Shown here piece by piece: positions 32,171 through 64,000 of a DNA stretch of 64,000 nucleotides (position 1 is the stretch's first letter; each line of letters opens with the position of its first letter). Source of the stretch: Macrostomum lignano. Lineage: Eukaryota. The notes beneath the pieces are model-generated. The model saw only the letters and a program-made list of their open reading frames with translations, did no database searches and was not told the origin of the DNA. The stretch is taken from positions 143,289-207,288 of the forward strand of contig NIVC01000657.1 of assembly GCA_002269645.1 (NCBI GenBank). Reading direction: 5' to 3'. A program made the translations under genes and the position numbers.

Positions 32171-32569
32171 CGAATAGGAAATATGATAGTGACATATAAG
32201 TAGGATAAGAAGAAAGCAGAAATCCTGATAAAAAATCAATTTTTTTGAAAGCCAAGTCAGCGAATGAAACACAGATAATGATCTGAAAAATGAGTTTTTG
32301 CGAATGTTGAAAAAATAACAAAAATTGGCTTATTCAGTTTAGCTAGTGCAAAAAAACCAGAACGTCATTACCTAATCTTTATAAACACATTGTTGGAAAA
32401 TAATGACCTAAGCTTAATTTTAAGCAGTCGTCTAAAGCCCTTAGCTTACAAAAATGGACCAAAAATGGGTGGAAAACTGTGTAACAGTTCTTAATTAAAC
32501 CTGTTTTGCCTAACCTACTGCTTGATTTTAAATTAACCGATAGCACACTCTGCTCACTGAATGCATAAA

Positions 32570-33305
<736 letters not shown>

Positions 33306-34667
33306 TATATGTGTAGATGTAAGCAATAAATAAAAATAGCTCCGGGAAAATCCATTTATCCAAACATTATCCTGGAACCACTACGAGAAACTAATTGACA
33401 AGTCAATCGCAACTTTACTATAGATCAATTATAGTGTTTAATAATCTAGGCATTAGGATAATGGCTTTCATATTGACACGAGCAGTCAATCACTCTGGGA
33501 AGGAGAAACGCGGCAAATGCGCAAGATAAATGCGAGGAGCGGAATTGGGAAGAATATCCTTTAGATTGACGAAGGAAGAAGTCATTGGGAGTATGGATAT
33601 TTATGTCAACACCAGAAATGTAATAAGTTCTAAAAGCGTTCAAGTCGCTCACTACCCACCACATACTATAGCTATAGTTTAAAGCGATCTTAAGTCCTAA
33701 TAATCAACTAACGATATGTAGCGAAAAAATCTTTAAAGACTTGGAATCAAATTTAAAATTGACATAGCAAAAACTGTCCTAACGAAAAGTAAATTATTAA
33801 TTTTCATAATTTTCAGTACAGTTATACTACGTTGCGTTAATCCTTACCAACCTAAAGTCAAATTTGTTCTAGATTTGTTCAAACTACATATGCATAGATG
33901 CACGAAACGAGAAATTTCTATGCAAAGTTGGCAAAGCAATCTGAAGAAAATTTTTAGAACATATCAGACTGCACCTGCCGGAAACTACCAATAGTTTTTA
34001 AAAAAAGATTAAAATGAGGTATCATATAGACTATGAGCTTTCGCTCTAAGCATTTGAGAAACCTCCCAATGAACTAGTCTGTATTTAAGCAGTTCCCCCT
34101 TCCCATGAGCCTTGGTATCTCAGCACTTCCCCATCCCACAGCTGCGATGCAAATGACTTGACCGCAATTTATAAACACAAGCCTATATTTAGACTGAGTG
34201 CAATATAATTTGATCATTCAACTGGGCCATGCTTGTTAATTGAGCCCAGGCGCTTATCTACACATTAAAATTTAACACGTGGCTTGGTAAAAAATGAATG
34301 ATAGAAAAAATCGTTTCACGAGTTTATGCGAGTGCACAACAGTGTCCCAACGTGCCTAAAGTGATTCAAACACTCCTTAATTTATTCACCTCTCATTAGC
34401 TACTCCGATGTACATATGCAATTGCACGTTCAAGTGATGCCTTAATTAATAGTAGAGCCAGCTACAAAGTGAAGTTGATTGACAAAAAGGCACGGTGCAA
34501 AGACTCATGTGCCTCTCTATATTGCTCAAATACTACCAACCAATGAGAATACTTCTGAGCGAGTTGCCAATAGAAACGCCTCGATTCCACCAACATATAC
34601 TTACTATGAGACAGTTATTATCGCATAAAACCAAACCAGGAAGCATCGCTCTGCACTTAGCTGCATA

Positions 34668-42204: not shown

Positions 42205-45200
42205 TTAGCTGTTGAAAGTGTCTTTCAGACTGGCAGTTTGCATTGGAATGCAGTCTTGCAGATTTTGTTTGAAGTCGTCAAGACTGCGCACTTCAATGCC
42301 CTGCAAAGGATATATATGTACACGAGTACAATTAGGGCAATGGTTGAAATATTGATAAGCACTTACTGCTAGTTTATCCTGTTAAAGCTTTACGCTATTT
42401 TTACTTAGATGACGAGACACTCAGATTTTTTAATTTGCCTGAGAGCCTAAAGGTACTGTATACCTGTAATTATTCATAACTACACGCTGAAGGCAACATT
42501 TCCAGTTTAAAAAAAAACAGAAAAGCGCATTTACACTCGTACAATGCTGCTGGCTCACCTGATAGGTAGCATAATAATCGTCCTGAGCATTAAAGGTGAA
42601 CTGCTGCCTATTGATTTTGTGAACACTCAGCACACGCCTGTCTTGCGAACCCTGTTTCAGCCATTTCTAAAATATATAGTTTACAGTGATTACATGTAAT
42701 ACAGATATGTACTACAATGTAAGTGGGAAGTTTTTGATTGGAAAAATCAAATAATCAAATCATTCGATTGGTACGAGCACTAGCTGATGAATAGCTTTGA
42801 CATAGATATTGTACGTCGTACATTGGGGCAGTAGTGGAAGGGCTGGGTAAATGTACATTGGGGCAGAAAGGAAAGGAGTCGAAGGACTGAGCAACAATAT
42901 GTGCATTGGGGTAAGGAGTGGAAAGTCTTGGAATTAAGCACATGTACATCGGGGCAGGAGTGGAAGGACTGGGCACATCTACATTTGGGTAGAAGTGGAA
43001 GGACTGGGACATGTACAATAGCCACACAGTACGAGCTATAACGACGTTGGTATGTATATTGCTGGGAAAATTTGTGCCAATGCGTCAAAGTCTTGAAACT
43101 TTAAACGTTCACTTCGGATTATCGAACGCTTACTAGTGGGTAAACAACTAGACAGCTCACCTTCCAATAATTGTAAAGATCCTTTTTGCTAATTCTATCC
43201 AGAATAGCTTTGACATTGGTGTCCAAACTATTGGTATCCCAGCTGAAATCGTAGTCGCCGCAGGTGATGTGTCGCCAGTACAGCTCATGCTGCCTGTTTA
43301 AATTTGGCGCAGTAAACAGACGTGTCGCAAGCTGCTGCACTCGACTCTTCATACCCGCCAGCTGCTCCTTGGTTATGGAATCCACTGTTTTACCGACGCA
43401 TGCGATTACCAACTCGATTGTTGTTTCAATCTGCGTGCAGATGTTTAGCAACAGGTCAATATTCATGCAGTAAAACAGCTTGCTACATGTCATTCTGAAT
43501 GTAAATCCGCAAGAAAATACAGTAGCAAAATATTCTGTCAGCCAAGGTCTCAAGAAACTGGGGCACAGCGTCAAAGGGCGTGTCTCTGAATCGTCCACCG
43601 GCAGTTAAAGAAACGCCGACTGAGAATGCCGTGTCCTTGCTGTGAATGCATATATCTACTGCATCTAATACCTAGAATAATTGCATGCAGAAGGCAGGTT
43701 GTGAGCGCGCAGGCACAACGCTTTCGACGACATGGTTCCACGGCCAATGCTCCGAGGCAATTCCGAGCGCGCCAATACTGTACGCAGGCACCCATGCACT
43801 CATTATACACACGCTCACACAGAGTGCACAGCTTGACCTTCTAATCGTCAGGCATGTACACTCTCTGCGCCTTGGGAGTTGGTCCTCATGGCTGTGGATA
43901 GCACGACGGCTCTTCTAATGAGAAGTTCAAACCAAGAGACTTACCGCAACGGGATGCGACTCGGAGACTAGCTCAATGACGATGCAATTGGCGTTGCAGC
44001 CAATCATCGTGTCCCACCTTAAATCGCGTTTTGTACAATCGGGCAGTTTTGTACAGAGTGTCAGAGCTTCTTTCAGTAGCCACAAGCAGCACTTATGCCA
44101 GAACCGACGGAAGAAGAAGTCGTCATATTTTGACGCTTGCTTTTTTAACCCTCCCGATATCGCAGTCGGCATCTGAAGCAGCAGGCCGCAAACCGACTTG
44201 GTCAATGCAGCGTCACCTTTCTTCAACCTCGTAGTCCGGCTGGTAAGTTCGATGCTTCTGTTAGTAGCAAAGTTCAACCGGATGAAATGGTGACTGCCCC
44301 TTGGTAGGAGTCGCTCAGAACAGCGCATAAAAAATGGATCCAATCGAAACGTGTCCGCTGGACGCCGCGAAAGTGGTGGAAGAACAGCTGTAATTGAGTC
44401 AACCAGTGAGATGACTTGCTCAGCAGTGAGATTGCCCAGCGCCAGAATCTCAGCATACAGTTCTGGCCGGCTGGGCCAGTTCTCGCGTTCCAGCGGAGTG
44501 GCATGAGCGGGATTGGAAAAGTGATGCGCTATGAAACTTGACGGATTGATTTCCACTTCTCGGTCTGGCTTTTGTGTTATGAGAGGAAAACATTGTGTAA
44601 TTATGGTTGAGCTACAAGTCAGTGCGACAGTTTACAATCAATGGTACCTCACTCACCCAGCGTTTGCGTATCCAAGGACTGATAGTCTCGCTGGATGTGT
44701 AAAAATCCAGCCAGATCCAAGCGATTTGCAATCTGGGATAAGTCTGAACAGGGCTGTAATGAAAACTTCTGCGCTCTAAGATTTCCAATGCGCTCCTGTG
44801 CAAAGGTGAACGAAATGTTCAAAATTAATTTGAATGCAATGAATGTAATTTTAAATTCAAAAAATAACTTTGATGGGCTACATCTTATATCCTGAGCCGC
44901 TGGACCCTAAGCACATACTGTACACAGGCACGCAGTCATAACAACCGCTCACACAAGGTTTACAGCGGCCCTGACTTTCTAATCGTCAGGTACGTACAGG
45001 GGCGTCGCCACCGGGGGGACAGGGGGGGGGAGGACATGCTAATGCTTTGTCCCCCCCCCACCCCATCTTCGTTGACCTGTAATGGAAATTAAAAATCGCT
45101 TCAGAGCGACAAAACATAGCGCCTGCGGACAAAAATGGTGCCTGCGGCGCTAAAATGAGTGCCTGTGAACCAAATTGAGTACCTGCCGGCGCTAAAATGG

Positions 45201-48200
45201 GTGCCTGCGGTGCTAAAATGAGTGCCTACTGCGCTAAAATGAGTGCCTGCTGCGCTAAAATGAGTGCCTGCGGTGCTAAAATGAGTGCCTACTGCGCTAA
45301 AATGAGTGCCTACTGCGCTAAAATGAGTGCCTGCGGTGCTAAAATGAGTGCCTACTGCGCTAAAATGAGTGCCTGCTGCGCTAAAATGAGTGCCTGCGGC
45401 GCTAAAATGAGTGCCTGCGGCGCTAAAATGAGTGCCTACTGCGCTAAAATGAGTGCCTGCGGTGCTAAAATGAGTGCCTACTGCGCTAAAATGAGTGCCT
45501 ACTGCGCTAAAATGAGTGCCTGCGGCGCTAAAATGAGTGCCTGCGGTGCTAAAATGAGTGCCTACTGCGCTAAAATGAGTGCCTGCTGCGCTAAAATGAG
45601 TGCCTGCGGCGCTAAAATGAGTGCCTGCGGCGCTAAAATGAGTGCCTACTGCGCTAAAATGAGTGCCTGCGGTGCTAAAATGAGTGCCTACTGCGCTAAA
45701 ATGAGTGCCTACTGCGCTAAAATGAGTGCCTGCGGCGCTAAAATGAGTGCCTGCGGCGCTAAAATGAGTGCCTGCGGCGCTAAAATGAGTGCCTGCGGCG
45801 CTAAAATGAGTGCCTGCGGTGCTAAAATGAGTGCCTGCGGTGCTAAAATGAGTGCCTGCGGTGCTAAAATGAGTGCCTGCGGCGCTAAAATGAGTGCCTG
45901 CGGCGCTAAAATGAGTGCCTGCGGTGCTAAAATGAGTGCCTGCGGTGCTAAAATGAGTGCCTGCGGTGCTAAAATGAGTGCCTGCGGTGCTAAAATGAGT
46001 GCCTACTGCGCTAAAATGAGTGCCTGCGGTGCTAAAATGAGTGCCTACTGCGCTAAAATGAGTGCCTGCGGCGCTAAAATGAGTGCCTGCGGTGCTAAAA
46101 TGAGTGCCTGCGGTGCTAAAATGAGTGCCTACTGCGCTAAAATGAGTGCCTGCGGCGCTAAAATGGGTGCCTGCGGTGCTAAAATGAGTGCCTGCGGTGC
46201 TAAAATGAGTGCCTGCGGTGCTAAAATGAGTGCCTGCGGTGCTAAAATGAGTGCCTACTGCGCTAAAATGAGTGCCTGCGGCGCTAAAATGAGTGCCTAC
46301 TGCGCTAAAATGAGTGCCTGCGGCGCTAAAATGAGTGCCTGCGGTGCTAAAATGAGTGCCTGCGGTGCTAAAATGAGTGCCTGCGGTGCTAAAATGAGTG
46401 CCTGCGGCGCTAAAATGGGTGCCTGCGGTGCTAAAATGAGTGCCTACTGCGCTAAAATGAGTGCCTGCGGCGCTAAAATGAGTGCCTGCGGTGCTAAAAT
46501 GAGTGCCTGCGGCGCTAAAATGAGTGCCTGCGGTGCTAAAATGGGTGCCTGCGGTGCTAAAATGAGTGCCTGTGGCGCTAAAATGGTGCCTGCGGCGCTA
46601 AAATGGTGCCTGCGGCGGTAAAATGGTGCCTGCGGCGGTAAAATGAGTGCCTGCGGCGGTAAAATGGTGCCTGCGGCGGTAAAATGGTGCCTGCGGCGGT
46701 AAAATGGGTGCCTGCGATGCTGAAATGAGTGCCTGCGGCGCTAAAATGAGTGCCTGCGGCGGTAAAATGAGTGCATGCGGCGCTAAAATGAGTGCCTGTG
46801 AACCAATTGAGTGCCTGCGGCGCTAAAATGGGTGCCTGCGGTGCTAAAATGGTCTCTGACGACACCGATTCTGAAAATAATGTACATATAGTAATTTAGT
46901 CATGTACATGTACATGTACAATTCTTGGCTTTGTCCCCCACCATAAAATCCATGGCAACGCCCCTGGGCATGTACACTCTCTTTGCCTTGGGGGTTGGCC
47001 CTCATGGCACCACAACCTCCCGGTCAATCTTCCGACCTTCCGCGGAATCGAACCAGGGGTCGTGTTGCGCGAGATTCAGACGCATTATAACTGAACTTTT
47101 CTGCCCACAGTGTTTTAAGGCAGTCTGCCAAGGGAAGACACACCTGGTTGAAGTAGTTTAAGGGAACTCGCAGCTCTGCAATGCGACCCAATGCGGCCAA
47201 CAAAAGGGCCGGTAGAGGCTCGCTGTGACCGCTGCAGCAAACCTGGATGCCGCTGCAGCTTCGAGAGACGCTCAGCTCAAGGTCGGCTTCAACCGCTTGC
47301 ATTTTCAGATCGGCCAGCTCTTCAGAAAATAGATTGGCCAGAATGCTGATCTGCAGAGACGAGGCCAGGGCGAGCCTCACAACGTCAACTGGAGGCAGCA
47401 GGTCGACGGATATGTAGGCAAGTTCGGTTTGGAACCGGTCATCTTGTCGGAACCAGAGATTAGTGCTGGATGAGCTGCCGTCTAGTGTACTTTGGCGTTT
47501 GATTTTACGAGGCCCGTTCGGCTGTGGGTTTTAATTATCGGTTTATACCGCAGATACTACAACATGATGAATACGGTGAACTCATTGCTCATAGCTCATT
47601 GGCCCATAGAGTAGAAAGCAGTTGAGTAGAAAGCTTCATTGGATAAGACTCGTTTATTGATCCAGCTCGCTTAAAATTTTTCTTGAACACGTCTCTTCAC
47701 AAATAGTCTTTTTACCTCCGCTTTAGACCTCTTCAGCCTAACGCTTTCATGCAATGCATATTCTCAATGACGCTGTTTAGTGCACATTACGTCTGCACCA
47801 ATTAGCAAGCTGTAGACGTCTACAAGTCACTCCAACTACGGTTCTTTACATAAAATAGCTATCACATTCTTGCTTGCTACTTCCTGACTGAAATTTAAGG
47901 AACTAAGCTGGCATGTCTAGTAGTCCGTGATCATAGCAAATGCGGTTAATGTCAGTATGACCAAAAATATGACCGCAGTCAAAAATTTATTTATTTACTG
48001 ACCTGATTAGTTGAGTCTCGGGGCTTTAAACTAAAATCTTTGCACACAAATGGCCTCGGTCTTGGCAAGGTGAACACAGTGTCAAGCTGACAGCTTGCAG
48101 TTGGCCATTCGGCTCTGCACAGAGCCAATAAGTTCTCAGACAGCTTCTCCAAGTTGTAAGGAGCTATGCCGTCGGGCTGGCAGCACAGCCTTCCGTCGGG

Positions 48201-50847
48201 AGCTGAAGTTGATGTGTTGAAGTTGCGATTGTTGCTTCTTAACTACAAAACACATGATTTACTATTCTTCGACTACAAAACCCTTTGGTCCCGCAAGAAA
48301 CAATAAAGAGATTTTAGCGCTTTTTTGTTGTTGAAATTCTTGCAAATTTAAGGCCGCATGATCAAGCGAAACTTGTGATGGCCAAGTTCTAATAAATCCA
48401 TGCACACTCTCTGTGTGCCTTGGGGTTAAATTGGTAGGACAGCCCCTAGAAAGATTCCTGGAACAAGCCCAAATTATGTAGACTAACACAATCGAAGCAT
48501 GGGTCGTGTGGTGCAAGAGTCAGACACGCTTCCGCTGAGCTGGCCTGCCTTAACAAAGTAAAGACAGCAATTCTCAACAGTTTTTAGACTCTCTGTTCGA
48601 AATTCATACGTTCGAAATGCCTCTGACTCTTGCGCAACACCACCGGCTTGTGCATAAAATTAGCGAGAAGGGGGTTGCTATGCGTACACGATTTACGCCT
48701 TCGAGAGCCAGAGGCACAGAGACTGTACATGCCTGACGATTAGTAAGTCAGGGCCGCTGTACACCCTGTGTGAGCGTGTGTATGAGTGTGTGTCTGTGTA
48801 CAGTATTGACGCTCTCGTATGTACGTGCTCAGGAGTCAGCGGAATGGCCAGAATTGCAGCGCTGGTTGTGGAACGATGTCGCCGAAGGCGTTGCGCCGTC
48901 CCTACCTACATCGCTCCTGCGAAGGTTTATACTTTTTATAACCCAAGTCTCACAGCTGAATAAGCATACGTGCTCCGTATGCCAGTCCAAGTCGGAAACG
49001 AACACTCTGCACTGGTCCACAGTCAGACAAGCCAGAAACCCGTTCATTTCCTCGGCAGAATAGCTCGAAAGCAAGTGCCTGGCTGAGAGCACATCCGCGA
49101 TCTCGTACCGGTGCAATCGAGTCGCGATGTTGAACTCGTCATTCACCAATGGCAGGCGTTTGAGCTTCAGAAAAGACGACCAATCGTCAACTTCAGGTAG
49201 GAAATGCGCCCGTCTATCTAACCTGACCTCATTGTGCAGCTGTTCGAAATGCTGCGCCTGACTGCGGATCATTGCCAGGTAGCGGAAGACTGCACTAATT
49301 ATCTGCGAGTCAATGAAGGTAAGTTGCGAAGAAAAAATTAGGAAATAAGTTTTTATAGGAGATCGCTCAATGAAGTGTACGAAGATACTGAAGCGATATT
49401 AAAGACACAGAAAAAGGTCCTTAGCTTATGTCGAAGCTTATGTGAAGCTCAAAGTTTTAATATTGATCTCAATTAGATTTCCGCACTTGATAAATTTAAC
49501 CAAACGTACCAAGTCTTCTGTTTCCACAGTATACTTCGTTGTTTCATCGCAGTGAAGAGCAATGCAGAACGTATCAAAATCAATGCAGCCTGTGTCCGTC
49601 AGGGACGCGCTATCTAGCTGAACTCCGAGATTAGTACGCAAATACTCCTTCAGACTGCCCAGTCCATCCCTGCCAAACAGATACTTCACTAATAGATCGG
49701 GCGATTGTTTGTGCAGATCCGTCTGATCTGGCAGCGGGAACACAATGAATATGCCGCCCAAGTTCATGCGCTTGCCGCGAATCTGTGCATAAGTAGCAGG
49801 GGTGAGTGGATGCAGTGGATGCAGTAATCCGCACTGCTAGACACAATTTCTATGTTTGTATTCTTCGCCTCAAATCCACTGTTTTTCACTGTAAACTACC
49901 AGAGGAAGAACACCCTGAAAATTAGCCAGAGTAAAAGGCCAGTGACGAACGAGGCCAGAGCAATTACCAATCCCAATTACCTTGGTTCCCCCTAACGCAG
50001 TGTATGATCCCTCCAACGGATGTTGATCCTTCGAGCGTACTCGAGAGTCAGTCGGGGTTGAAAAATCAAATTTTGTGGCGGCAGTCAGGCTCTGAAATAA
50101 AGAGTTCGGAGTTCTCATTTAGGGATTAGACGCCTGTAGTTTGTCGCAGTTTAAATTGGAGTCGGCTATTTTTTTTTAATACCTCGCTGTAGCATGCTAT
50201 TTGTTCATTGAATGTCATCCCGTACATACCACAAGCTCGTCAGTTGAGCGACCATCTTCCAAAGCCATTCGCCTCCGGCAGTTTGAGTTGAAATGCCGCT
50301 TGTGGAATTCAGCTAGCCTATCGCACAGTTCCTCGATCTGAAACAACTCGACTGTGCGCCGGCTCGGTTGAACCATCCGATTGTAGGGGTGACTCGAATT
50401 TCCCGAACAACGCTGCAGCCAATTCAAAGAGGATAGTTGTTGCTTGTACTTTTCCTTTTTGATTAAATGCTTGATTCTGTTCGCAGAAAATTCCGGTGTT
50501 GTAATGCTTTTGATCAACTGTTTGAGCACCTTTGATACGTTGTCTGAGGATGTTATTTTGTAGCTGAACTCAGTTCGGTCATCGGCAACTCTCACACTGC
50601 CAGTCAAGCCGATTGTAGAATCCGTTTGCATGGCAACCATGCCTGCCAGCAGTTCAGCCAGTCCCAGACAGTCTGGCGGATCGTGCAAGCGACCAACACC
50701 GATGGTGAGGCAGAGCAGCGATTTTCGATCGAGCGTGTCCTCAGTTTGGCTGACTAGACAGGCCGAGTAATTAGACGCTGTTTCTATGGCAACGCACTTC
50801 GACTGCAATGGTGCCGGAACATCTTTTAATATTTTGCCGATTTCCAT
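42205..50847 (-). CDS. Insulin-degrading-enzyme-like (M16A) pseudo-protease, copy A, about 1053 aa, frame intact
   Basis: Exons (minus) 50230-50847, 49981-50091, 49510-49782, 48954-49302, 48003-48202, 47144-47521, 44657-44795, 43945-44564, 43161-43430, 42559-42666, 42205-42300 total 3162 nt with no stop. IDE-like blocks GRLHDPPDCLGL, SGNSSHPY, FPLPD..PDLLVKYLFG.DGLGSL, LWFRQDDRFQ, ILALGNLT, LDDFKQNL. HxxEH position reads ELLAG. Confidence 0.85.
43660..43935 (-). mobile_element. SINE family 1 copy (5'-truncated)
   Basis: GTGTACATGCCTGACGATTAGAAGGTCAAGCTGTGCAC and GTGGAACCATGTCGTCGAAAGCGTTGTGCC match the 48.7 kb copy. Confidence 0.75.
44900..47095 (-). mobile_element. SINE family 1 copy split in two (47095-46967 head, 44996-44900 body) by a MITE
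   Basis: Head with GGTTCGATTCC at about 47043-47053; the body resumes at 44996 with ...CCTGACGATTAGAAAGTCAGGGCCGCTGTAAAC. Confidence 0.78.
44997..46966. mobile_element. hAT-like MITE carrying a 1.7-kb 21-bp array (GCCTGCGGYGCTAAAATGAGT)
   Basis: TIRs CAGGGGCGTCGCCA (44997-45010) and TGGCAACGCCCCTG (46953-46966), 13/14 match; 8-bp flanks GGTACGTA / GGCATGTA (6/8); array at about 45135-46850. Confidence 0.8.
48330..48925. mobile_element. Two divergently oriented SINE family 1 copies (minus about 48330-48545, decayed; plus about 48610-48925)
   Basis: tRNA-like heads form the inverted repeat GTGGTGCAAGAGTCAGA / TCTGACTCTTGCGCAACACCAC; hairpin motif at 48724-48763. Confidence 0.68.
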
Positions 50848-50949
50848 CGCCACTTTCAGTTGAACGAGCTAGGTGTCTAGAATTTTAAGAGTAGAGATGA
50901 AGATGCGTAAGATTAGATTGCTTATTAGTTTCTGATAGCGCACAGAATC

Positions 50950-51090
50950 GAGACCAGGTACTCTAGTCACAGGTAATCTAGTCGCAGGTACTCTGGTCGC
51001 AGGTACTCTGGTCGCAGGTACTCTGATCGCAGGTACTCTGATCACAGGTACTCTGGTCGCAGGTACTCTGATCACAGGTACTCTGGCCAC
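50950..51090. repeat. 15-bp minisatellite (AGGTACTCTGRTCRC)
   Basis: Visible units between the divergent starts of IDE-like A and B. Confidence 0.92.
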
Positions 51091-51678
51091 AAGCATTCTG
51101 GTTAAGTTATTGTGGTATTACGGTAAAAGACTCAAATAAACTTCTGCTAACTGCTTCTGCTAAAATGTAGCAAATGTATCTATTAGAGAAAAAACATATG
51201 GCAAATGCCACAGCTCAACTTACGTTTCTGATCCAGCTCAAAGAAAGCAGATTGGCCGCAATATTTTTTATGCCAGAGCAGTTCAGTCACATTCACGGGA
51301 AAAATGATTTTAAGTACAATTTTATATACTCTTGGGGTCTTGAAAAATTATCGAAATTCCATTTTGGCTCAATCATTAATGGTTAAATAATAATCTTGCC
51401 CGTTTCTTTACTTTGTTCTTCATACATTTATTTGTCGGACTTTTTAGACATAGACTGGTGCGTTTGTTCAACTACTTAAATTGGAAAATCTTCTTTCATA
51501 ACAAAAATCGCCCCTCAAATATCTTTTGGCGGTAATCAATTTTCTGCAAAATTTAGTCTATGACACAGATTTGAGATCAAATTTAAATCATCATGAAATA
51601 CTTTTTAATCTTCGGTAGTTCGGTCAAGCAACTGGTGGTTTAAAGGACAAAAGAAAGAAGATCCAAATTGCATGAAGA

Positions 51679-54600
51679 ATGGCTCAATCAGGGAATGCGG
51701 TAAGTTTATATAGACCTTAAGAACGTAATTTTTACGATGTCCACAATTGCATTTTAGAGGATGTCAGTTTCTCAGAAGAAAATTAATAGTAGTTGTTTCA
51801 TAAAAAAATATTTTATACCACTACTAGACTGATGCAGCAGCCAGTGTGTCTCAGAGAGTCGACAACCTGCCTGGGCCGAAGAAGTGCACCTACAGAGCCA
51901 TCGAGCTGACAACCGGTGCCACCGCCTGTCTAATTCAAGAAGCTGAAGACGCCGACCCTTACGGACGTCCGTCGCAGTCAAATTTGATTGTCAGCCTTGG
52001 CGTCGGTCGTCAGCAAGATCCGCCAGACTGTCGTGGCCTGGCCGAGCTCTGCGCCGAACTGACGGTGCTCGAGCTTAACCAAAACTTTCTTTGTCAAAGC
52101 ATTCTCGACGATTTGACTTCTTACATAATTCATTTGGAATCGTTTCATCTCGAAAGCTTCTTAGAGGCTTTGTGCGCTGGAATTCGAAACCCCCGATTTG
52201 AAGAGGCCAACATAAAAAGTCTGCTTCACTGCCTTCAGTCTGGCCGATACAAACAAAGCTGGCCAGCTCTGGAGTTTCTGCAGCGCTGCTCGGGGAACAG
52301 CTCCTCAGCTCACCCATTCTATCGGCTTGCTCAACTGACGTCAGCCGAGCGAACTGTTGAATCATTGGAGATCAGTGAGCTTAGAAAACGACTGATTGAA
52401 TTTCACGAACGATACTACTCCGGCAATCTGCTGCGTATTGTGGCTGTTGATTCAAGATCGCTGGACACATTGGAGGCAAGTGTTCCTGTTCAAATATACG
52501 TTTAAAAAGAAGTCAAGCAGATTCTTCTAGCTGAAAGTATCCCAGCTACAAATGAAGCATGTAACAATCAATTTTAGAGCATTATTGTGACCACATTTGG
52601 CGGCATACCCAATCGTTCGGCTCCTAAAGTGGACATCAGCTCTCGAGAATTGGAGGACGTGAAAGTAAAATCGGGCGGAATCAAGGTAAGCATTCGAGTG
52701 GATTGAAACAAACAATAGCCTGTTTCAAACAATAAGAGAAACATAAAATGACTCTTTGCGCTGTTCAATCCCAGATTCGAGGCAAGAGCATGAACGTGGA
52801 CGGAATTCATCTCGTGTTTCCTCTGCCAGACCAATCCAGCTTGAGTAGCATTGCACCGGATCTTTATGTGAAGCATTTGCTGCGCAGCAAGCATGTCGGC
52901 AGCCTTGAAGCAAGTCTAAACTTGCACGGATTTAGCTTGAACTCTGCCCGGCTGATGGATTTCGGACAAGTTGGATTCGATTTCTTCTGCATTTCTGTGC
53001 AGTGCAATGCTGAAAATAATCAGATAGAAGACGAAAACATGGTCAGTTTTAATTTTTGTTATCTCTAACGATTGCTGGTTCAGTGTGTGACAGTAGTTGA
53101 GTGGCATGACCCTACTTCGAAGTAGATGCCAAGGCCCATGGGAGGTATTGCTGAAACTCTGTGTCTCATGGAGAGTTGTTCAGATGCCTTGAGCCAAAGC
53201 TCATAGGAACTCTCATATTTTAGGGTGGATACCTGGCTTTTAGAGCATCATTTAGAGCGACTGTACAAGGGAAAAACCTAAATGTAGTTTAAATAAAAAA
53301 AATGTACTCCTTTCTTTGTTGCCTTCCAAACGAGGGGCGCAGATTGCTAGTCTAAACATGAAAATACATTGACTTTATTCCTCGAATTCTCTACAGGCCA
53401 TCAAAATAGTGTTTCGCTACTTGGCCATGATTCGCAGTGTTGGCCCACTAAATTGGCTACACAATGAGCTTCGCTTGACTTTGCAACGCGAATTCGCACC
53501 GAAAGGAAAGCTGGAGGAGTTTGAGCCCATGGATCCTATGATTAATCTGCTACTGCATCTGGCATCTGACGATTATTCGTTAGCAACTCGGCTTCAAAGA
53601 TTTTCACAGCGCGACGCTTTAACAGCTCGACACCTGATCACTGAGTACTCGGCTCAGGCCATTGCAGACTTTCTAACCTTTTTGACGCCCGACAGGTGTA
53701 TTGTGTACGTCTCTGATATTGGTTGGAATAGCAAGCCCGCTTGCAACTACCAGAGTAAGCTTCTATTGGTCTATGACGGACGGATGTATTTCACGCTGTG
53801 GGGTTGTAGCGCCGTAGTGGGTTGGAGCCTTAGTGGTTAGAGCGTTAGACTCACGACTGATAGGTTGCACTCAGAACAATTTGTGTCCTTGAACAAGACA
53901 CTCTGCATTAACTCTACACTGTTTCAGTTCAACCAGCTGTAAAATGAGTGCCAGCATTAGCTGGTGTAATTGAGGGTGTGTGTGTTGCGACCCCCCCCCC
54001 CAGTCCTTGGACTGAACTAAGTAAGCAGTCTTCGGGATGCGCCGCGCAATAGCTGCGGCTGAGCTGTCGGTTGCACATCTGGCCATTAGGATAGGTGTAA
54101 TCATTATTATTATTATTCACGCTTGGACACAGAGTAACATACTTGACGATCGATAAATTCAATGCTGCTGTACATTCCATTTAATTGTGTTCCTCCGTAC
54201 GTATTTGTGTTCGTGTTTGTGCCTCAATGGTCTGCGGAATGGGTATGACTGCTTGTCTGACTTCCAGCCGTGTCGAAGCTCCCCAGCTACTAATTAACAT
54301 TAAGTCTCACATCTAATTACCGAAAGACTTAACGTCAATGCTTAAACAGTAGTATTTAAAGACGTCTTAATCTTGACCTTGCAGCTCCCAGTGGCAAGCT
54401 CTGCTGCGTGCCGGAAGGTCAGCAGGCTGAGTACTCCACCGAAAAGCTGTCACCAGCTCTTTTGAACCTCTGTTCAGCTCCGTGGCCGAAACAAGACTGC
54501 GATTTGGATAGAGAGTTCAAGATGCCGCATTCAAAGCCATTTATGCCTTCGGATATTAGTTTAAGACCGAGAGTTAGCAAAGCTCAGGTAAGAACTTTGA

Positions 54601-57356
54601 TTTGATATGTAGTCAAATTACAAGGTTGAACGAAAACTTTAATGTACTTTTGATTAAAGCTGTTTATCAGTCAATCTTCGATTAATAAAAGCTAAAATCG
54701 GTGCTTTTGCTACTTCTTTTATAATCTTCTAATAAAACTTCATACTAACATCTTAATCAGGATTGCAATAATTTGCTGTCGATAGTAAACAAAAGCTATG
54801 AAAAGTTACTTTTTTCAGTAATTATTACCAAGTTTGTTTAACCATGTAATACTCGTACAACTGGACCTCATCTGAGGACAAAAAAAGATAAAATCGCATT
54901 TTCACGAAGTTGTGTCAGCTCTTAATTGATCCCAACAGGCGTGCGTCACAATTTCTTTATTTGAACACCTGCTGCTTATCCGCATTTTCCCTCAGCTTCC
55001 GGGGCCTAGGCAGCTTCGCATACCACCAATGCCGAACTCGGTTTCGTCAAACTCCCGACTCTGGTTCAGACAGGACGACAGGTTTCAGTCCGATTTGGCC
55101 TACATTTCAATCGACCTAATTCCTCCAATTGAATGCAGTCCAAAGAATCAAATTATCTTGGAAATTTTGGTTCAACTATTTTCTAAAGCGTTGCACAAGC
55201 TCAAGAAGCAAGCTGCCGAAGTCTGTATGGAGTTGAGCATCTCCCGTAGCAGCAACGGTATCCAGCTGTGCTTTTCCGGATACAACGAACCGCTGCTCAA
55301 GTTAATAACGACTGCTCTGCATCAGATTGCCGATCTGAAGATCACCAAAGAAAGCGTTCACAAGGTCTGCTGTGGCGTTATTCATATCCTTTAAAGACTT
55401 GTCAAATTTTACTTTAATTACATACTTTGCCTATCAATACTAATTTCAGGTCGGCTCAAAGGTTTTGCACCTTGCAGATGAATCGGCGAGCAAAGATGAA
55501 GAAGTCGACCAGCTCGCGTGCCAGTTGAACTTGGCTGGCTACTCGCATATGCAGCAGAAACTGGATGGGAGCAGTCTCAATGGTGAGCAGTTATACTGTT
55601 GTTTCGTCAAAAGGCATATCTGCTTGCACTATCCAATTTTGCGACACTCTAGGCGTACCAATCAAGGATTTAATGTCCGTTGCCAGTTACTTTTGCGAAG
55701 CCGCCAAAACAGTACAAAAACAGCCGAGCAAAAGCCCAAGACCGGTGCGAAATCTGCACCGGGTCTGTTTGCTGACATCCTGGTGTTTGGCAACGCTACC
55801 GCGGACGATGCAGTCAAAGCTGCTCAATCGATCCTGACTGCCCTGCCGTCGCTCTCGTCAACAGCAAAGATGACATCGAATCCTAAAGACCAGCAGCGTC
55901 GCCCTGAGCACCTTCTTAGCAAAGGCAGTTACAGTACAGTGCAACTTGGAGGCGCTGAAAAATGCGTGGCTGTCAGTCAGAGCGACTGCTACAGCAGCAC
56001 CTCCTGCGTCTGCGCCATTCTCATTCAAATTCCATTAGCAAAAGCAAAGCCTCCAATATCGATGAGTGCCGCAACGAAAGCGCTAGGGAAGAGTTTTTCA
56101 CGCGAGCAAGTCACGATTGTCTGCTACAGATGATGCTAGCAGCTGCTGTTGCTACGCCTTCTGACAGGATTGAAAGTAAAATATCGCTTGGTTACGGCGC
56201 GAACTGTGTCATATTTCAGAAGATCATCGAGCAGTCACCTGCTAAGGTAAGTTTCAAGCATTTTTTGCCAAGTTTGCCATTTTCCCCAGTAGTTAGGTTT
56301 TCCTGTCATGGTGATAATTCCTTGTGAACTCAGAATTATAGCCTATTATAAGTAAACTTAAGTCTTGTCTTAAGTCTTAGGGTCGTAGCCTAGTGGTTAT
56401 AGCGTCACACTCAGCACTGAAAGATGCGGACCCACGCGAAATAAACCTTATGTCCTTGAGCAAGACACTTAACTCTGCATCGTTGCTTCAGTTAAACCAG
56501 CTGCAAAATGGGCAACAGCATTAGCTGGGGTTATTGATGGTGTGTGTAGCGACTCCCAGTCCTTACGCAGCGAAACGAGCCGTATGAAGGGATTGAGGGC
56601 AGGAATTACTATTATAAAATCGTGCTGATTTGAAGCCCCAGAATGAAAAATCTTTTTTAGATGGAAAAAGAGATCGAGCCCTTTATTGCTAAGATCGGCA
56701 ATCACCTGACTGCCATGTCTTCGGAGTCTTTAGAGACCTACAAGCAGAAAGCTCTTCAATCAATGCAAGCATTGACAGTCCTAAAAGCATGGAGCAGCAT
56801 CACTCAATGTACTGGACTCGCATCATGTCCAGAAATTTCGAATTCAGTTGGGATGACCCGCGAGCGATGGACTGTCTGCGCGCTATTGTGGACAGTATAA
56901 AAAAGGAGGACCTGTTGAACTACTGGAAGGTAAACGTCTGGCTTTACATATAAATTCAATTCAATTTTGTGACAGCCAACTGTCGGTAAATCCCTGATCA
57001 ATAAATAAATGAGTGATTTAGTTGCTACTGCACTCCAAGACGTGCAAACCCTTTTATCAGTAAGACGTCAATAATCATCCCCAACCTAACGCCCCTAAAT
57101 CTATAGAAATGGTTTTGTTCGGAATCTAAAGACCGCTCCATGCTCTGTCTCCAAAACTATTGCCGAATGGACATCGACAAGTCCGGAACGTCTGTAAGTA
57201 TTTTTTACCGTGCCTTTTTATTTATCGTTTTAGCCGTCTATCCGTCAAAAAATGTTGCAGGGCAAAGTCATCGCGGATCTGGAGAAGTTCAAGAACTCTC
57301 TTGAGCCGGCTGCCCTACCGATACCAAGCTGTCTCAAGACTGTGCACGACGCCTAA
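51679..57356 (+). CDS. IDE-like (M16A) pseudo-protease, copy B; three single-base frameshifts (young pseudogene or assembly errors)
   Basis: Exons 51679-51699, 51828-52475, 52578-52685, 52775-53041, 53397-53754, 54385-54587, 54996-55364, 55450-55582, 55653-56246, 56661-56929, 57107-57193, 57261-57356; intron positions and phases match copy A. HxxEH position reads ELCAE. One base is missing near 55720, 56090 and 56780. Confidence 0.78.
53820..54060 (+). mobile_element. SINE family 2 (tRNA head plus CORE-like domain)
   Basis: A-box-like GAGCCTTAGTGGTTAG; TGTGTCCTTGAACAAGACACT...CAGCTGTAAAATGAG resembles the CORE-SINE domain; second copy at 56378-56600. Confidence 0.7.
56378..56600 (+). mobile_element. 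SINE family 2 (tRNA head plus CORE-like domain)
   Basis: TAGCCTAGTGGTTA A box; TATGTCCTTGAGCAAGACACTTAACTCT...CAGCTGCAAAATGGG; collinear with 53820-54060. Confidence 0.7.
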
Positions 57357-58039
57357 TCTCATTGAGCTAAGACTTCCTTGTCAAGATTGTGATCGCTGTA
57401 TACATTTTGTGTTTGCAAAAATATAACGAGGTAATATACAGCTTTAAGTTCTGCACCTCTGACCTGACCGACCACAAAATAGTGTTTGTTTATTGAAATC
57501 TGTCGAGCCTGTGTCAAACCAAGTTCTGTAGCCAGTATAATTGGTTTGAAATTCTCTACTTGATTGTCTTTTAACCAGAAAGAATTGAGCTTTAAAAAGC
57601 TGACTTGGAATGCAGTCAGTTGGAAGAGTGCAGCTTGGAATTGATTGGCCTTAGGGTCAACCATACTGCGGATCACAGCTGGCGATAGCATTGTCCATTG
57701 TACGCATTGTACGCTCAACGCTTCGAAAGCATTGCGTAGGGCTACTAAAAATATATTAATGATTTGATATATGACAAACACATTGTCTCATGAATGTATT
57801 TTTAGAACCCTAAAATAATGATTCCTAAGCGTGGAATAATGAGCGTACAGCATGACACAATGAGACAATGTTCTTATTTATATAGTTTTTAGGTAATTCT
57901 ATATGGAAAGAGTGCACAAATTCGTATCCTTTATGTCTGTTGTCTATGGTAAAAACTGTTTCAAATCGCCAAGCCAATGAATTCATCAGGCACGCATTTT
58001 AGCCCACAAACTACACTGTCTTAGGCCGTTCCTCTCAGT

Positions 58040-59946
58040 TTGTTTATTCGATAGAGGCGATAACAAAGGAAGCATTTCGCATTGGGTGAGTATCAAGGCA
58101 ATGACCGATGCGACAATTGGAAGAGATACAAAATTACGGGCCGAAAAGAACGACTGCAATTTGGTGATGATCATTCATGGAAGGTGACATTGGAGCATGT
58201 GGACAGCTTTGGACCAAAATCCTCTCTTGACTTTAAAGGGGATACGACGTATTTTACGGGATCAGTTTGATGAAGTGAACGTGAGCGAAACAACTGTGAG
58301 TCTTACTTTGGATGTACCTAGGTCGTGATGCAAATTTTGTGGCACAGTTCAAGTATTCAGCATTGGCCCCTTTTCAACAGGCGTTACTATGAGTGATCTG
58401 CAGTCCATCGTAGATGTTTTTCTCAACTCGTCTAAAGTCGAGTCCCAGCCGCAGACGGAAGAGGCATCACCTTGGATTTTATTCGCTGATATTCTGGTGC
58501 TCATGATGATGCTATCACGTCTGCTCAATCCGTTCTGTCAGTGATTCCAGCTTTGTCAGCTGAGACAGCAACAGAATTAGAGTCCGATTTTTCTAGATTC
58601 CGTCGCCCAGAGCGCCACCTTTGCAAGGGAAGCCACAGCACCATCCAGCGGTGCCAGGACCAAGAATCACACAGAGCTCATCGCCAACGACATGCTGCCT
58701 CTACTTGCGGCTTCGTCATTCAGATTCCTGTGGCGATGGACGAGCCTCCGTGGCGATGACGAATGCTATGAAGAAACTGGGAGAAGAGTTCTGCAACCGA
58801 GCCTGTCACAGCTATCTGCTACAGTATATATTGGAAGTTTCTAATGGAGTGGAAATATGCAAAGTCTTCCGAGCCGTATCGCGAGGTTACAGTGGCAATT
58901 GTTTCCTGGTTGAAATGAGCCACGACAATTCACCTGCAAAGGTTGGACAAACGAAAACCTTACTGAGTGATATTTGATGCGCGATACTAATTTATACGTG
59001 TCATTTGGAAGTAACCAGTCTCTTTGCGCAATGATATTCATTTTTGAGATTAAAATTGTCGAATAATATTTTTACATTATTTCCCTGCTACTTTCTCTCA
59101 GATGGAGAAGCAAATCGAGTCTTTTATTGCTGAGATCGAAAATCACTTGACTGCAATGTCTTCGGAGTCTTTAGAGACCTACAAGCAGAAAGCTCTTCAA
59201 GCAATGCAAGCATTGACAGTCCCTAAAAGCATTGAGCAGCAGTACTCAATGTACATGTACTGGACTCGTATCATGTCCAGCAACTTCGAATTCACCTGGG
59301 ATGACCCGCGAGCGATGGACTGTCTGCGCGCCATTGTGGACAGCATCGGAAAGGAGGACCTGTTGAACTACTGGAAGGTATATTTTTGGTTGATTAGGTC
59401 GCTGAGTCGATTACCGATCGACTTCTATCAATCTTATTAGTGTCATGGATCTTGAGCTGAGTCATGCACGAACACCTGTTGTTAGTTATATTCTACTTAA
59501 ACAGGGCGCACTTTGTGTTAGCTGGTTTTGTGCTTGGTACATTTGTATCTCCTTAAAAGGTCACGTCAAGGATGATCACCGGGGTTGCTTAATTGTTTAT
59601 TTCCATAGCCTTTCAATTTCTTTATCTTCTCCCCGCAGAAATGGTTCTGTTTCGGATCGCCAGATCGAACTGTTTTCGAGCTACAGAACTATTCAAAACT
59701 AGCGATTGATGAATCTGGAACATCCGTAAGTGTTGAAAAATCTTTACAAACCTAGTTATACCTTCACGCATGTAATTTGTTATTTTAAATTTGAATATAC
59801 CATAGTTTCAAAATTTGTTTCCTAGACTTTGCTTTTAAATAACTCATAATCGTGATTTCTAAAATCATTTGTAGGGCACAATCATTTCCGACTTGGAGAC
59901 GTTAAAAAGTAGTCTGGAAGCATATCCAATACGATCACTTAATTGA
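58040..59946 (+). pseudogene. IDE-like copy C: C-terminal half only, disrupted
   Basis: Exons 58381-58941, 59102-59377, 59639-59725, 59875-59946 are homologous to the last four exons of B, plus decayed upstream bits at 58040-58300. About 13 nt (FGNA codons) deleted near 58500 and a one-base frameshift near 58750; no N-terminal exons found. Confidence 0.72.
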
Positions 59947-60689
59947 CTGTAGTTTGAAACTAGACATAACGCTCATGTATGCTTGCTGTACTACTGAATC
60001 AAATAAAATACGATTACGAAACATAAACTCGAGCCTTTTTTCATTAAGTAATTCGATCAGTTTTTAACTTATACGAGCTTATAAGAATAGTGACAATTAT
60101 TTCATTTTACGAGTACGAAGCGACGTCATTTGTTTTTTGTTTTCAATAAAAAAACTAATACAATATAATGTATGGCCATCAGTTGTGATAAATCTGAAAA
60201 ATGCGTTATCTACAGATCTACATGTACGAGTACTATCCGACAGATAGTCAACTGCCGGAGAGATGAGAGATGGAGATCACGCAGTTAAGAACATTCAATG
60301 TCTCAGGGATACCATACGGAGAACTTGTGCATTGTACGAAGCGTTTACGTACTTGGGGATGACAACCGAAACGATGAAGTGCATTGGAGCAGTTTTCAAT
60401 AGAAATTAGCTACTGCAACGCATCTAGTCTATTAAACTAAGACACTCGCGACTCGCCAGCGTTAATTTGGCGCTATTTATTACTTCTAATCTCAATACAA
60501 GAATGGCCAGAGACTAAAAGTCCTTTAAACTTTTATCATGGACATCAAAGTGGAATTTCAATTTATTTGGCATAAATTTACGCTTTACGAGCATAAGATT
60601 GTCTTAATCTACAATACGCCTATTTAAATTATATTTCGACGTAAAGCTAAAGGTCGACTGCAAGTTTTTCTCAGTCAGACTGTTCTAAA

Positions 60690-63361
60690 ATGTCGTCGAG
60701 GATTAAGCAACGCTTTGATAACATCGAGTCACCGCGCAGTTTTTGGTCCAACTTCTTGGAATGCCGCGGTATCGAGCTGCACAACGGCGTTCAGGCGCTG
60801 CTGATTCGGCACAACGTCGACGATTGCCAGACAGATTCGGAGCGCAACTGGACGATGGAGTCATTTCTCTGCGTCAGCATGGGTGCCGGCCAAAGGCACG
60901 ACCCGCCTGACTGTCTCGGCCTGTCTCAGCTCTGTAACGAAATTATTGCTGCTCAACAAAGCTTGGAATTAGATAATCAACAACCGCAAACCAGTCATGA
61001 TTACTGGGAACTTACGGAAGCATCGGAAAGAGCCTCGCCTTTGGAGGACATCATGTCTCAGTAATAACTTCTTTGATCAAACTGAGTCTTGTAAAATTCA
61101 AACTTGTAGTTTAACACTCCTCAATGTAGCAATAGAAATCCATGAGAAACCTTTGAGGACACGATTTTGCAAGTGATGCACATAGTGAAAATAAGAAACA
61201 TTTTATCCTGCATATTTACCCATTTCTGTTAACACGAAGTGAAGACATTTTTAGACAAAAAGCACCTCACAAAAATGAAATAGGGTACGAGCGTATGCAT
61301 GCAGTAAAAGTTTTGCGTCAATACGAGCGTACATTGTTCTTATACTAGCTCTAAACTTCACGATGCTTAACCCTTCAGGACAAAAACAGACGTGAGCATG
61401 TTTTGTATAATAAATAAGTCCTTTCAACAACTGCATCATGTTACGAAGTTGCTTGCCAATAGCCTCGAGCGACCGGACTTTTCGGAGGCAAACATTAATC
61501 GACTGATGCGGCTATCGCTCGACAGGGAAAGCCGCAAACTCTCCTTCGCCCGGTCACCCCTGCACCTGCTGGAGAGCCGCACCTCCAACCCGCAGCATCC
61601 GTGCAATCGGCATGCAGTCTGCGATCCATCAGCCACCGTTGCCGCTTTCAGCGCGGCCGAGTTGCGCACCCGCCTAATTGAGTTTCATTCGCAGCACTAC
61701 CGCGTTAGCGACTTTCGCATAGCTGTGGCGGATCCCCGTCCTCTAGACGAACTGCAGGTAAGTCCAACTGTTTCGTAGAGCTTGTTAACATCTCAGCATC
61801 TAAAATCTCTAGTTAACTCGTTAACATCAAAAAGCCATCAAACTATCTTTAATAATGCAATCGAAGTCAGAATACAGAACACACTGTATCTGTTAGAACA
61901 AGAAAAGGACAAAAATGTTTTAAAATTTTCGATGATTTCAGAGCCTCATCGAGGTTGCTTTTTCGAGCATGCAAGAAAACTTGCCCGTTTCTTCACCAAT
62001 CGTGAATGAGAATGTCGGTCATCCCTACGACGGCACGGAAACGGCAGTCAAGGTATTTTCATCCTTTTTGTAATAGTTATCTATTCTAAGCCATGGAAGC
62101 AATTTATTTGAATAGCACAATATTCATCCTCTATTTGTAATTTTTCGCGGCCCAGTGGCTGCAATATAAAACGAACAAAGTAACCCGTATACCGCTCGCA
62201 GATTCGCGCCCTAAATGCATCTTTTAATGGCATCTACATTGCCTTTCCGCTGCCGGATCAGTCGACAAAATTCGCCTCGTCGCCGGACCTGTACCTGCAG
62301 TTCCTGCTAGCTTGCGACAAACCGTACGGTCTCAATGCTTTTCTGAAGACTAATAGCGCGGCCGTTACTGCCTCGGATTCTGATCCCGCCACTGGCTACG
62401 ACACATTTTACATTTTTGTGCACTGCAACAGAAAATTGAATCCGCGTTGTGAGGACATGGTAATGTTACGAGTAAATTTCTTTAATAGGAGCTCATCGGT
62501 ATTGAGCAAAATTAACACCTCTCGATAACAAGTGCTGGAAGCTCACTTTTAGATTAAGAAATAAGATTGCCGACAAAACTGAGCTTCTTAAAGCTATTTC
62601 CAACCTTTTTTCGAGAAACCATCAAGCATCAAGTAGCGAACGGAGGCTAGTATAGTAGTATAGTAGGCATGTCTCGAACGGATCCCAGCCAGAATACTGA
62701 TTTCAGGAAATCTGGACGCAATTCCAAGTTCCGACTTATCCCGAATCCCGATACTGAAATCCCCAGCGTTCGTGACAAGTCAGGGCAAAAGTTTCCGGTC
62801 ACGAGTTTTGAAAATATTACTTTGCATGCAGCTCACAAGTTTCTAAAATTGTCCTGGATGGTACATGTAGGAAGGAAATTTAACTTTTTCTTAAATAAAA
62901 GGCTTAAAGCTGTTATGGATAATAAATTTCTTCGTACCCTGTGGCTCATTTGTGGTCTATAGGGTGCAGCAGTTTACTCCTTAATTATGGATGCTCTGAT
63001 TGTGACATCTTGATTCCCGTTGTGCACCTTTAGATCATCACTGCCGTCTTTCGCTACCTGGCCATGCTCCGATCAGTTGGGACGCAAAAGTGGCTTTTTG
63101 ATGAGGTGCAAGATTGGCTTAACGAGTGCGAACTACATGTAAACGCGAATCAACAATGGAGGCGCTCTGACATCGACGAGCTGTGCTTCAGGCTGCGACG
63201 GTATCCGCTGCAACACGTGCTGACGGCTCGTCGCCAGCTAACGAAATACTCGGCGGAGGAGATTAAAGACTTATTGGAACTTCTGACTCCCGAACGGTGC
63301 AAAGTGTTCGTGCCCGAGCGGTTTGTTACCAAATTTGACGGACGGGCTAAGGGAACTCAGT
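60690..63361 (+). CDS. IDE-like (M16A) pseudo-protease, copy D, 5' part (continues past the window end)
   Basis: Exons 60690-61060, 61379-61757, 61942-62052, 62202-62459, 63034-63361, in frame. CRGIELHNGVQALLI matches IDE YRGLELANGIKVLLI; HDPPDCLGL; SNPQHP; FPLPDQ; VFRYLAMLRS; RYPLQHVLTA. HxxEH position reads QLCNE. Confidence 0.83.
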
Positions 63362-63409
63362 GTAAGAGAAATTTTAATTGTACAATTTTGCATGCACCCG
63401 CATTTTTTT

Positions 63410-63765
63410 AGCGGCAGGGGGGTTGTGTGCACCCTGGCGCACTTTAAGCGACATAAGCACACAACCGGCGAGAGGCATTACTGCCCATTCCGTCGACTCC
63501 CCTGAGCAGGCATACAAGCGCGCGGATACGTACGCAGGCACACACTCACACAGGAGTGTACAGCGGCCCTAACTTTATTTTATCGTTAGGCATGTACACT
63601 TCACTGCGCCTTGGGGGGTTGGCTCTCAAGGCCGTTAATTGCACAAGCGAGCCAAGCCAAAATTCCAATTCAGCCCCAAATTAATGTGACTGCACTTGGA
63701 ATCTAGCCTGGGTCGCTGGCACACCAGAGCCTGCGCTAGACCGCTGGGCTACGGCCCCCCTCATG
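63410..63765 (-). mobile_element. SINE family 1 copy with tRNA head
   Basis: A box TAGCCCAGCGG, degenerate B box GGCTAGATTCC, hairpin variant CCTAAC...GTTAGG at 63556-63599. Confidence 0.75.
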
Positions 63766-63794
63766 CACCCGCGTTGGTCAAGTTCATGTAAATT

Positions 63795-63985
63795 CACAAT
63801 ATTGTCGTCATTAATGAACGACTGCACAATAGGACAGTAGACGTCATTAATGAACGACTGCACAATAGGACAGTAGACGTCATTAATGAACGACTGCACA
63901 ATAGGACAGTAGACGTCATTAATGAACGACTGCACAATAGGACAGTAGACGTCATTATGAACGACTGCACAATAGGACAGTAGAA
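63795..63985. repeat. 36-bp minisatellite (GTCATTAATGAACGACTGCACAATAGGACAGTAGAC)
   Basis: About 5 visible units. Confidence 0.93.
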
Positions 63986-64000
63986 GATCATGAAACACTA

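Follow-up and report, generated by a model that had tools for sequence, protein, structure and literature searches.

Background

The closest described relatives of the genes considered here are insulin-degrading enzyme (IDE, or insulysin), a peptidase of the M16A group, and M16 homologues that lack its zinc motif. The alpha subunit of mitochondrial processing peptidase (alpha-MPP) and cytochrome bc1's core proteins, which belong to M16B, have the M16 fold without the motif and serve in non-catalytic recognition or scaffolding (PMC11266112; PMC12731061). They are two-domain subunits of about 50 kDa, paired with an active or structural partner, ancient and universal, and the pseudopeptidase review gives MPP as its sole M16 example. 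Cryptosporidium, an apicomplexan parasite, has a lineage-expanded family of M16A-like proteins (INS), some members of which lack HxxEH (PMC8092296); many are active, their domain numbers vary, and the members that have been studied, one of them a dense-granule protein, are tied to invasion or infectivity. Here we analyse a tandem cluster of IDE-like genes in 64,000 nucleotides of the Macrostomum lignano genome (contig NIVC01000657.1, positions 143,289 to 207,288; "the window" below). The products have lost the catalytic residues of IDE, and probably act as binding or scaffold proteins.

The cluster proteins resemble IDE, including the worm's own IDE (PAA70440.1), in their predicted four-domain single-chain fold, in their top sequence match in the PDB, in common motifs (FP.PD, F.Y...LR, LWF.QDD.F and GN), in several intron positions and in the lack of a signal peptide. 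They differ from it in having no HxxEH, distal-Glu helix or R/Y pair and no C-terminal tripeptide like peroxisomal targeting signal 1 (PTS1); identity to IDE is about 20-25%, and three members carry an extra N-terminal half. Unlike alpha-MPP and the core proteins, they are not two-domain subunits but M16A-derived single chains of 1022-1653 residues (about 115-185 kDa), lineage-specific and arranged in tandem. Unlike the INS family, they are metazoan, all of them lack the motif, they have no signal peptide and their origin is independent.

Results

The IDE-like cluster spans about 60 kb. Its members stand in the order A (minus strand), B, relic C and D (all plus strand), followed by two six-domain genes beyond the window. 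The features on which the argument depends are as follows.

42205-50847, minus strand: gene A, 11 exons, 1053 amino acids, an intact four-domain IDE-like protein
50641-50655, minus strand: ELLAG in gene A, replacing the zinc/catalytic HFCEH of IDE
51679-57356, plus strand: gene B, 11 exons, 1022 amino acids after repair of three 1-nucleotide deletions
52044-52058, plus strand: ELCAE in gene B, replacing HFCEH
58361-59943, plus strand: C, relic of a paralog, domain 4 only
60690-61060, 61379-61757, 61942-62052, 62202-62459 and 63034-63361, plus strand: gene D, exons 1-5
60927-60941, plus strand: QLCNE in the N-terminal half of D, replacing HFCEH

Pfam profiles for M16, M16_C and M16_M match both the exons and the full proteins of the cluster. 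PF16187 gave E-values of 4.7e-29 (A), 1.7e-35 (B) and 5.3e-28 (D); PF05193 and PF00675 also matched, PF00675 in A and B below the gathering threshold (19 versus 22.3 bits) and M16_M strongly. Among proteins of solved structure, the best sequence relative is human IDE (E = 2.5e-26). The N-termini, which we inspected directly, have no hydrophobic signal-like segment, and this is consistent with a cytosolic location.

The catalytic site was examined in an alignment of eight Macrostomum units with about 30 IDE-like proteins. HxxEH is present in every aligned active IDE that covers the region; three rows, truncated at the N-terminus, are without it. In all eight Macrostomum units, both histidines and the glutamate are gone. 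HFCEH is replaced by ELLAG in A, by ELCAE in B, by QLCNE in the N-terminal half-unit of D (D_N), and by RLCQR, ELCLR, ELCHR, ELCQR and QLCQR in the other five. The segment that carries the distal glutamate (E189 of IDE, in the REV.AVDSEH helix) is degenerate, with indels specific to each unit; a glutamate of A lies opposite E189 in the pairwise alignment with human IDE, a placement that the multiple alignment does not settle, and it is not conserved in the family. In domain 4, an arginine and a tyrosine (LRTKEQLGY) complete the M16 active site and are conserved in almost all M16 enzymes (PMC12731061). In A, B, D_C, F_C and G_C the pair is no longer conserved, and 11 residues after it are deleted. 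The IDE of M. lignano itself (PAA70440.1, P0009) is intact at all three places (HFCEH, AVHSEH and LRTKQQLGY). The block around the dead site (DPPDC.GLA.LC) is among the most conserved parts of the family, and active IDEs share much of this conservation. Judged from their sequences, the predicted products, with the IDE four-domain fold, cannot carry out M16 zinc catalysis.

Most of what the initial annotation had read from the letters of the window was borne out by these comparisons: the IDE-like identity, the exact coordinates of the three replaced motifs, the missing HxxEH and the degenerate distal-Glu segment, the absence of signal peptides, and the structural blocks (DPPDC.GL, FPLPDQ..PDL, VFRYLAM.RS, LWFRQDDRFQ and YWK). 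The copies are also as diverged as it had proposed, A and B being identical at 399 of 950 positions and D about 30-36% identical to either, and A, B and D have intron positions and phases in common. Its suggestion that the genes are zinc-site-less derivatives of IDE and not junk agrees with the intact reading frame of A and with the evidence on selection and transcription given below. It missed the extension of the cluster past the window, the six-domain architecture, the lineage-specific origin beside the true IDE and the testis and germline expression of a paralog.

When 1.84 billion representative proteins were searched exhaustively with a profile, all family members (E-values of 1e-169 or better) came from M. 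lignano. The next match was the worm's own IDE (3e-50), followed by ordinary IDEs (1e-37 and weaker), and the profile score, about 582 bits for P0008, the weakest of the full-length paralogs, then dropped to 187 bits. In a neighbour-joining tree built from the columns of the N-terminal half, the eight units form a clade in 100 of 100 bootstraps, sister to M. lignano IDE in 96 of 100. A, B, D_N and D_C have identical intron positions and phases, four or five of which are common to the true IDE gene, indicating duplication at the DNA level and not retroposition. We found no paper describing these genes, which agrees with the initial annotation in treating the family as undescribed, and did not find them in the supplements of PMC5816591 and PMC5730564.

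HxxEH is also broken in two further animal proteins of the alignment that resemble IDE, XP_051155398.1 of Leptopilina boulardi (P0102, GLSCLCQHM) and a Logan protein (P0094, GLASLCARM). Both are full-length IDE paralogs like those of the cluster, but they are uncharacterised single genes that branch separately inside the ordinary IDE group, as independent losses. P0094 keeps LGY with a lysine in place of the arginine, and P0102 has lost both R and Y. Dead IDE paralogs may thus be a recurrent and overlooked phenomenon.

Two contigs of GCA_002269645.1 (Mlig_3_7) overlap the window at 96-99.6% identity; they represent the same locus, as alleles or duplicates. Selection was measured by comparing the window with the Mlig_3_7 copy. 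Gene A has 21 synonymous and 12 non-synonymous differences, a ratio of non-synonymous to synonymous rates (omega) of 0.17 (p = 6e-7), and gene B has 9 and 4, an omega of 0.13 (p = 4e-4). Divergence is 1.36% in exons and 3.07% in introns of A, and 0.42% and 1.58% in B, so that introns have diverged 2-4 times as far as exons. Both genes are under purifying selection. The initial annotation had called the family "diversifying"; the comparison does not show this, the recent signal being purifying.

The Mlig_3_7 annotation, whose sources are RNA-seq and a de novo transcriptome, includes A (1053 amino acids), B, D and the downstream genes. A differential-expression table of 2026 (PMC12896417, Table S4a) gives a baseMean of 32 for the copy of B and 118 for the copy of the downstream paralog F. 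The paralog Mlig000040 is classed as Testis and germline_FACS, with positional counts of 6/724/876/592 (PMC7336406, supplement); this one paralog suggests a male-germline setting, and the genes of the window may have a germline role as well. Given their omega values and their transcription, A and B are not untranscribed copies with dN/dS near 1. Loss of catalytic residues in a gene that is selected and expressed is the mark of a pseudopeptidase, and that combination is what we found.

To place the sequence in three dimensions, we used an AlphaFold2 model of B, obtained through the near-complete protein P0180 with an 89-sequence alignment. The model has a mean predicted local distance difference test score (pLDDT) of 80.4 and a predicted template-modelling score (pTM) of 0.85. 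The top 50 PDB matches of the model in Foldseek were all IDE (E about 1e-43, probability 1.0, full-length alignment). In the model, B is a single chain of four alpha/beta domains, arranged in two halves joined by a short hinge as in IDE; the exon and domain layout of gene A is the same as that of B.

Gene models were obtained by combining a purpose-written protein-to-genome spliced aligner, database models and cross-paralog alignment. For gene A, spliced alignments to the protein models P0003 and P0004 and to gene B were used. Every intron of A is GT-AG, and the uninterrupted open reading frame (ORF) of 3162 nucleotides encodes 1053 amino acids. The UniProt models lack exons 2 and 7, which cross-paralog alignment recovered; once they are included, the length equals that of the product called on Mlig_3_7 contig NIVC01004151.1.

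50847-50230, 50091-49981, 49782-49510, 49302-48954, 48202-48003 and 47521-47144, minus strand: gene A, exons 1-6
44795-44657, 44564-43945, 43430-43161, 42666-42559 and 42300-42205 (stop included), minus strand: gene A, exons 7-11
45121-46851: 21-bp minisatellite of 83 copies in intron 6 of gene A, noncoding

A 474-amino-acid ORF at 45197-46621, made of MSACGAK repeats, was considered as a gene and rejected; it is the 21-bp minisatellite in intron 6. A and B stand head to head, and the spacer between them is presumably a shared promoter region.

50848-51678: A-B spacer, 831 bp
50955-51102: 15/45-bp tandem repeats within the spacer

Gene B is identical to the protein model P0002 at 971 of 975 positions. 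Mlig_3_7 annotates it as Mlig006322 fragments, with models of 205-763 amino acids.

51679-51699, 51828-52475, 52578-52685, 52775-53041, 53397-53754 and 54385-54587, plus strand: gene B, first six exons
54996-55364, 55450-55582, 55653-56246, 56661-56929 and 57261-57356 (stop included), plus strand: gene B, last five exons
55734, 56085-56090 and 56779, plus strand: three 1-nucleotide deletions (B exons 8 and 9), all of them within or next to short runs of one base

The ATG of B is probably supplied by a 21-nucleotide mini-exon (MAQSGNA), and the exon that ends at 52475 appears to be followed by a GC donor at 52476 (GAG|GCAAGT, a GC-AG intron). Database models of B choose an upstream GT in its place and thereby lose 12 conserved residues. 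The three deletions in B are absent from the Mlig_3_7 copy and from the assembly behind P0002. The Mlig_3_7 copy has private 1-nucleotide deletions of its own, in B exon 7 (window position 55567) and in D exon 4 (62209), and single-base indels between copies of the locus fall in exons as often as in introns. Because such indels are private to one copy and lie in or beside same-base runs, we read them as errors of long-read assembly. The three frameshifts of B are most likely errors of this kind, and the fragmented B ORFs of the annotation bear the signature of long-read consensus errors. Besides four single-base indels, the exons of B differ in length between the window and Mlig_3_7 only in frame (a 9-nucleotide deletion and a 3-nucleotide insertion), and the aligned exons of gene A differ by no indels at all.

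The part of D that lies in the window encodes an N-terminal half-unit (domains 1-2), identical at 470 of 470 positions to the start of P0166 (1602 amino acids); the gene identifiers for D are Mlig015450/Mlig021631. On the overlapping contig copy L001, the full gene has 17 exons, with exon 6 about 50 nucleotides past the end of the window. The half-unit ends in a hinge and is joined in frame to a complete four-domain unit. A second copy (L003) becomes unalignable after exon 13 of D and has an N-gap inside B; it was used for residues 1-1270 only. The same six-domain layout is found in M. lignano P0007 (1653 amino acids) and P0006 (1650 amino acids), whose genes come after D on the same strand, beyond the window. 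P0006 and the D model P0164 stem from the transcript-based Mlig_3_7 annotation. The table of PMC7336406 lists Mlig000040.g2 at 4953 nucleotides, equal to 1650 codons and a stop, so a single mRNA appears to span the fusion of half-unit and full unit. The N-halves of the three six-domain proteins may or may not share one origin, which receives no more than 26 of 100 bootstraps in the neighbour-joining tree of N-half columns. A 36-bp tandem repeat occupies 63806-63984, in intron 5 of D; there the window agrees with NIVC01000654.1 and disagrees with NIVC01004151.1, a structural difference between the copies.

The initial annotation had counted four M16A paralogs in the window, and this count must be revised. 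D is not a separate four-domain paralog but exons 1-5 of a gene that leaves the window, and C is not a full paralog: alignable sequence in 57354-60650 is confined to the last ~280 residues of a B-like protein. Domains 1-3 of C are not recognisable, alignment of B upstream of 58361 having given only noise. Where C resembles exon 8 (58361-58941), it can be read only with two frameshifts, and the invariant GN motif is gone. No substitutions separate the window from the Mlig_3_7 copy in C, and since the frameshifts are common to both they are taken as real. The Mlig_3_7 annotation calls no gene at this position. The last two exons of C are of a different character.

59102-59377 and 59875-59943, plus strand: last two exons of C, with canonical splice sites, an open frame and an in-frame stop

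Compared with exon 9 of B, the larger of the two has a dS of 0.30 and an omega of 0.22. This constraint is too strong for a dead gene; B may use the pair as alternative 3' exons, or the segment may have been converted recently.

Elsewhere, the window has ordinary animal genes as neighbours of the cluster.

9348-10872, minus strand: fragment of an amino-acid transporter
22050-22574, minus strand: Tau95-like protein, a TFIIIC subunit
26135-28539, minus strand: IFT52 (GIFT, central and C-terminal domains)
30617-32272, minus strand: serine hydrolase of the FSH1/OVCA2 type
34668-36940, plus strand: G-protein-coupled receptor of the rhodopsin type

Long low-complexity or minisatellite arrays at 359-1468, 15402-16038, 32379-33363 and 35765-36404 give long ORFs on one strand or on both; they are repeats, not genes.

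Discussion

We think it probable that the cluster is a set of catalytically dead genes derived from IDE, selected and transcribed, whose products act non-catalytically as binding or scaffold proteins. According to this reading, the M. lignano IDE gene would have been duplicated at the DNA level to give the founder of the cluster, which would have lost its zinc and catalytic residues before it multiplied; three of the genes would have gained a further N-terminal half (domains 1-2), joined in frame to a full four-domain unit. The proteins of the cluster would keep the IDE four-domain fold without M16 zinc catalysis, and the genes would have been maintained by selection and transcribed, at least one of them in testis or germline. 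Perhaps in the cytosol of male germ cells, they may serve as scaffolds, or may use what was the catalytic cleft and chamber, or its surroundings, to bind peptides or protein partners. The results above show the homology, the gene structures and the clade, as well as the lost catalytic residues, selection and transcription; the binding or scaffold function, the cytosolic location and a germline role for the genes of the window are inferred from them. Roles as a peptide cage, a decoy or a regulator of IDE, which the initial annotation proposed, are no more than possibilities.

Several points weigh against this reading. The absence of the family from other species may reflect missing Macrostomum data and not true restriction. 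The full unit of D (D_C) is under weaker constraint, with an omega of 0.43 based on 22 changes only. The tissue data are limited to Mlig000040, a paralog outside the window. As read in the window, the frame of B is broken by three 1-nucleotide deletions, and this copy could be a very recent pseudogene. Finally, the model of B superimposes on closed IDE crystals with a global TM score of about 0.45 and a root-mean-square deviation of 13-14 A; as the domains match while the score is low, the two halves would be placed differently from those of the closed crystals (open or otherwise hinged). The initial annotation had proposed AlphaFold as a check of chamber closure; the model shows a match of the domains and does not demonstrate a closed chamber.

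The most direct alternative, that these are decaying and functionless duplicates of IDE, could draw on the truncation and frameshifting of C in all copies seen, on the three frameshifts of B in the window and its fragmented Mlig_3_7 models, and on the loss of all catalytic motifs. We nevertheless regard it as very unlikely: the 1053-residue ORF of A is intact and its splice sites are canonical, D matches a full model at 100% identity, omega values are 0.13-0.17 with exons less diverged than introns, each 1-nucleotide indel is private to one copy and lies in or beside a short run of the same base, and transcripts exist. In addition, paralogs that are 35-42% identical still have open frames, which indicates long retention. 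Least likely of all is that the proteins remain active peptidases by means of another catalytic or metal site. No replacement constellation of His, Glu or Asp is conserved across the units, the positions of zinc ligand H108, catalytic E111 and zinc ligand H112 vary (E/Q/R, A/N/Q/L/H and G/E/R), indels fall in the distal-Glu helix and the R/Y pair of domain 4 is gone; what can be said for a new site is that the block at the former one (G.GR.xDPPDC.GLA.LC) is strongly conserved, that cysteine content is about 3% compared with 1.5-2.1% in IDEs, and that the fold is retained.

The proposal of the initial annotation that the proteins are decoys or regulators of the active worm IDE, acting for example by heterodimerising or by competing for substrate, fits the presence of bona fide IDE copies in M. 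lignano, the position of the family as sister clade to IDE, and the observation that pseudoenzymes often regulate active relatives (PMC11266112). It seems to us unlikely, given that the sequences are only about 20-25% identical to IDE, that domain 4 is among the most altered parts (the 11-residue deletion after the R/Y site, and the absence of exon 10 in B), and that testis-restricted expression of a paralog speaks against a general regulator of IDE. A further alternative is that these are neofunctionalised male-germline proteins (components of sperm or of spermatogenesis) whose IDE fold serves as a module for structure or interaction and has no connection with peptide capture. The testis- and germline-specific expression of Mlig000040 and the novel domain fusion are in keeping with it, as is the tandem expansion, lineage-specific and rapidly diverged, that is typical of reproduction-related genes in the genus (PMC7336406). 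We hold it to be doubtful; it overlaps with the view of the cluster as binding or scaffold proteins, and nothing separates the two.

The six-domain proteins together with A and B might form a new class of male-germline machines with the IDE fold, in which the extra half would pair with a second half, within a chain or between chains, and build a non-proteolytic cage or scaffold for spermatogenesis or sperm function. We offer this as a speculative possibility.

The cluster has a practical consequence for annotation. Pipelines name these motif-less genes "IDE" or "nardilysin" and attach metallopeptidase and zinc-binding Gene Ontology terms to them (PMC12896417, Table S4a), which is misleading. 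A selectively maintained tandem family of full-length, single-chain dead enzymes derived from IDE, in an animal and with a 1.5-unit (six-domain) form, does not appear in the pseudopeptidase or M16 reviews that we consulted. Inactive M16 homologues are already a known kind, and the interest of this family lies mainly in its six-domain architecture and in its host, a tractable model in which RNA interference and transgenesis are available. The cluster amounts to a natural experiment on the IDE clamshell without catalysis, and may bear on roles, such as those of holdase or scaffold, that are debated for IDE itself.

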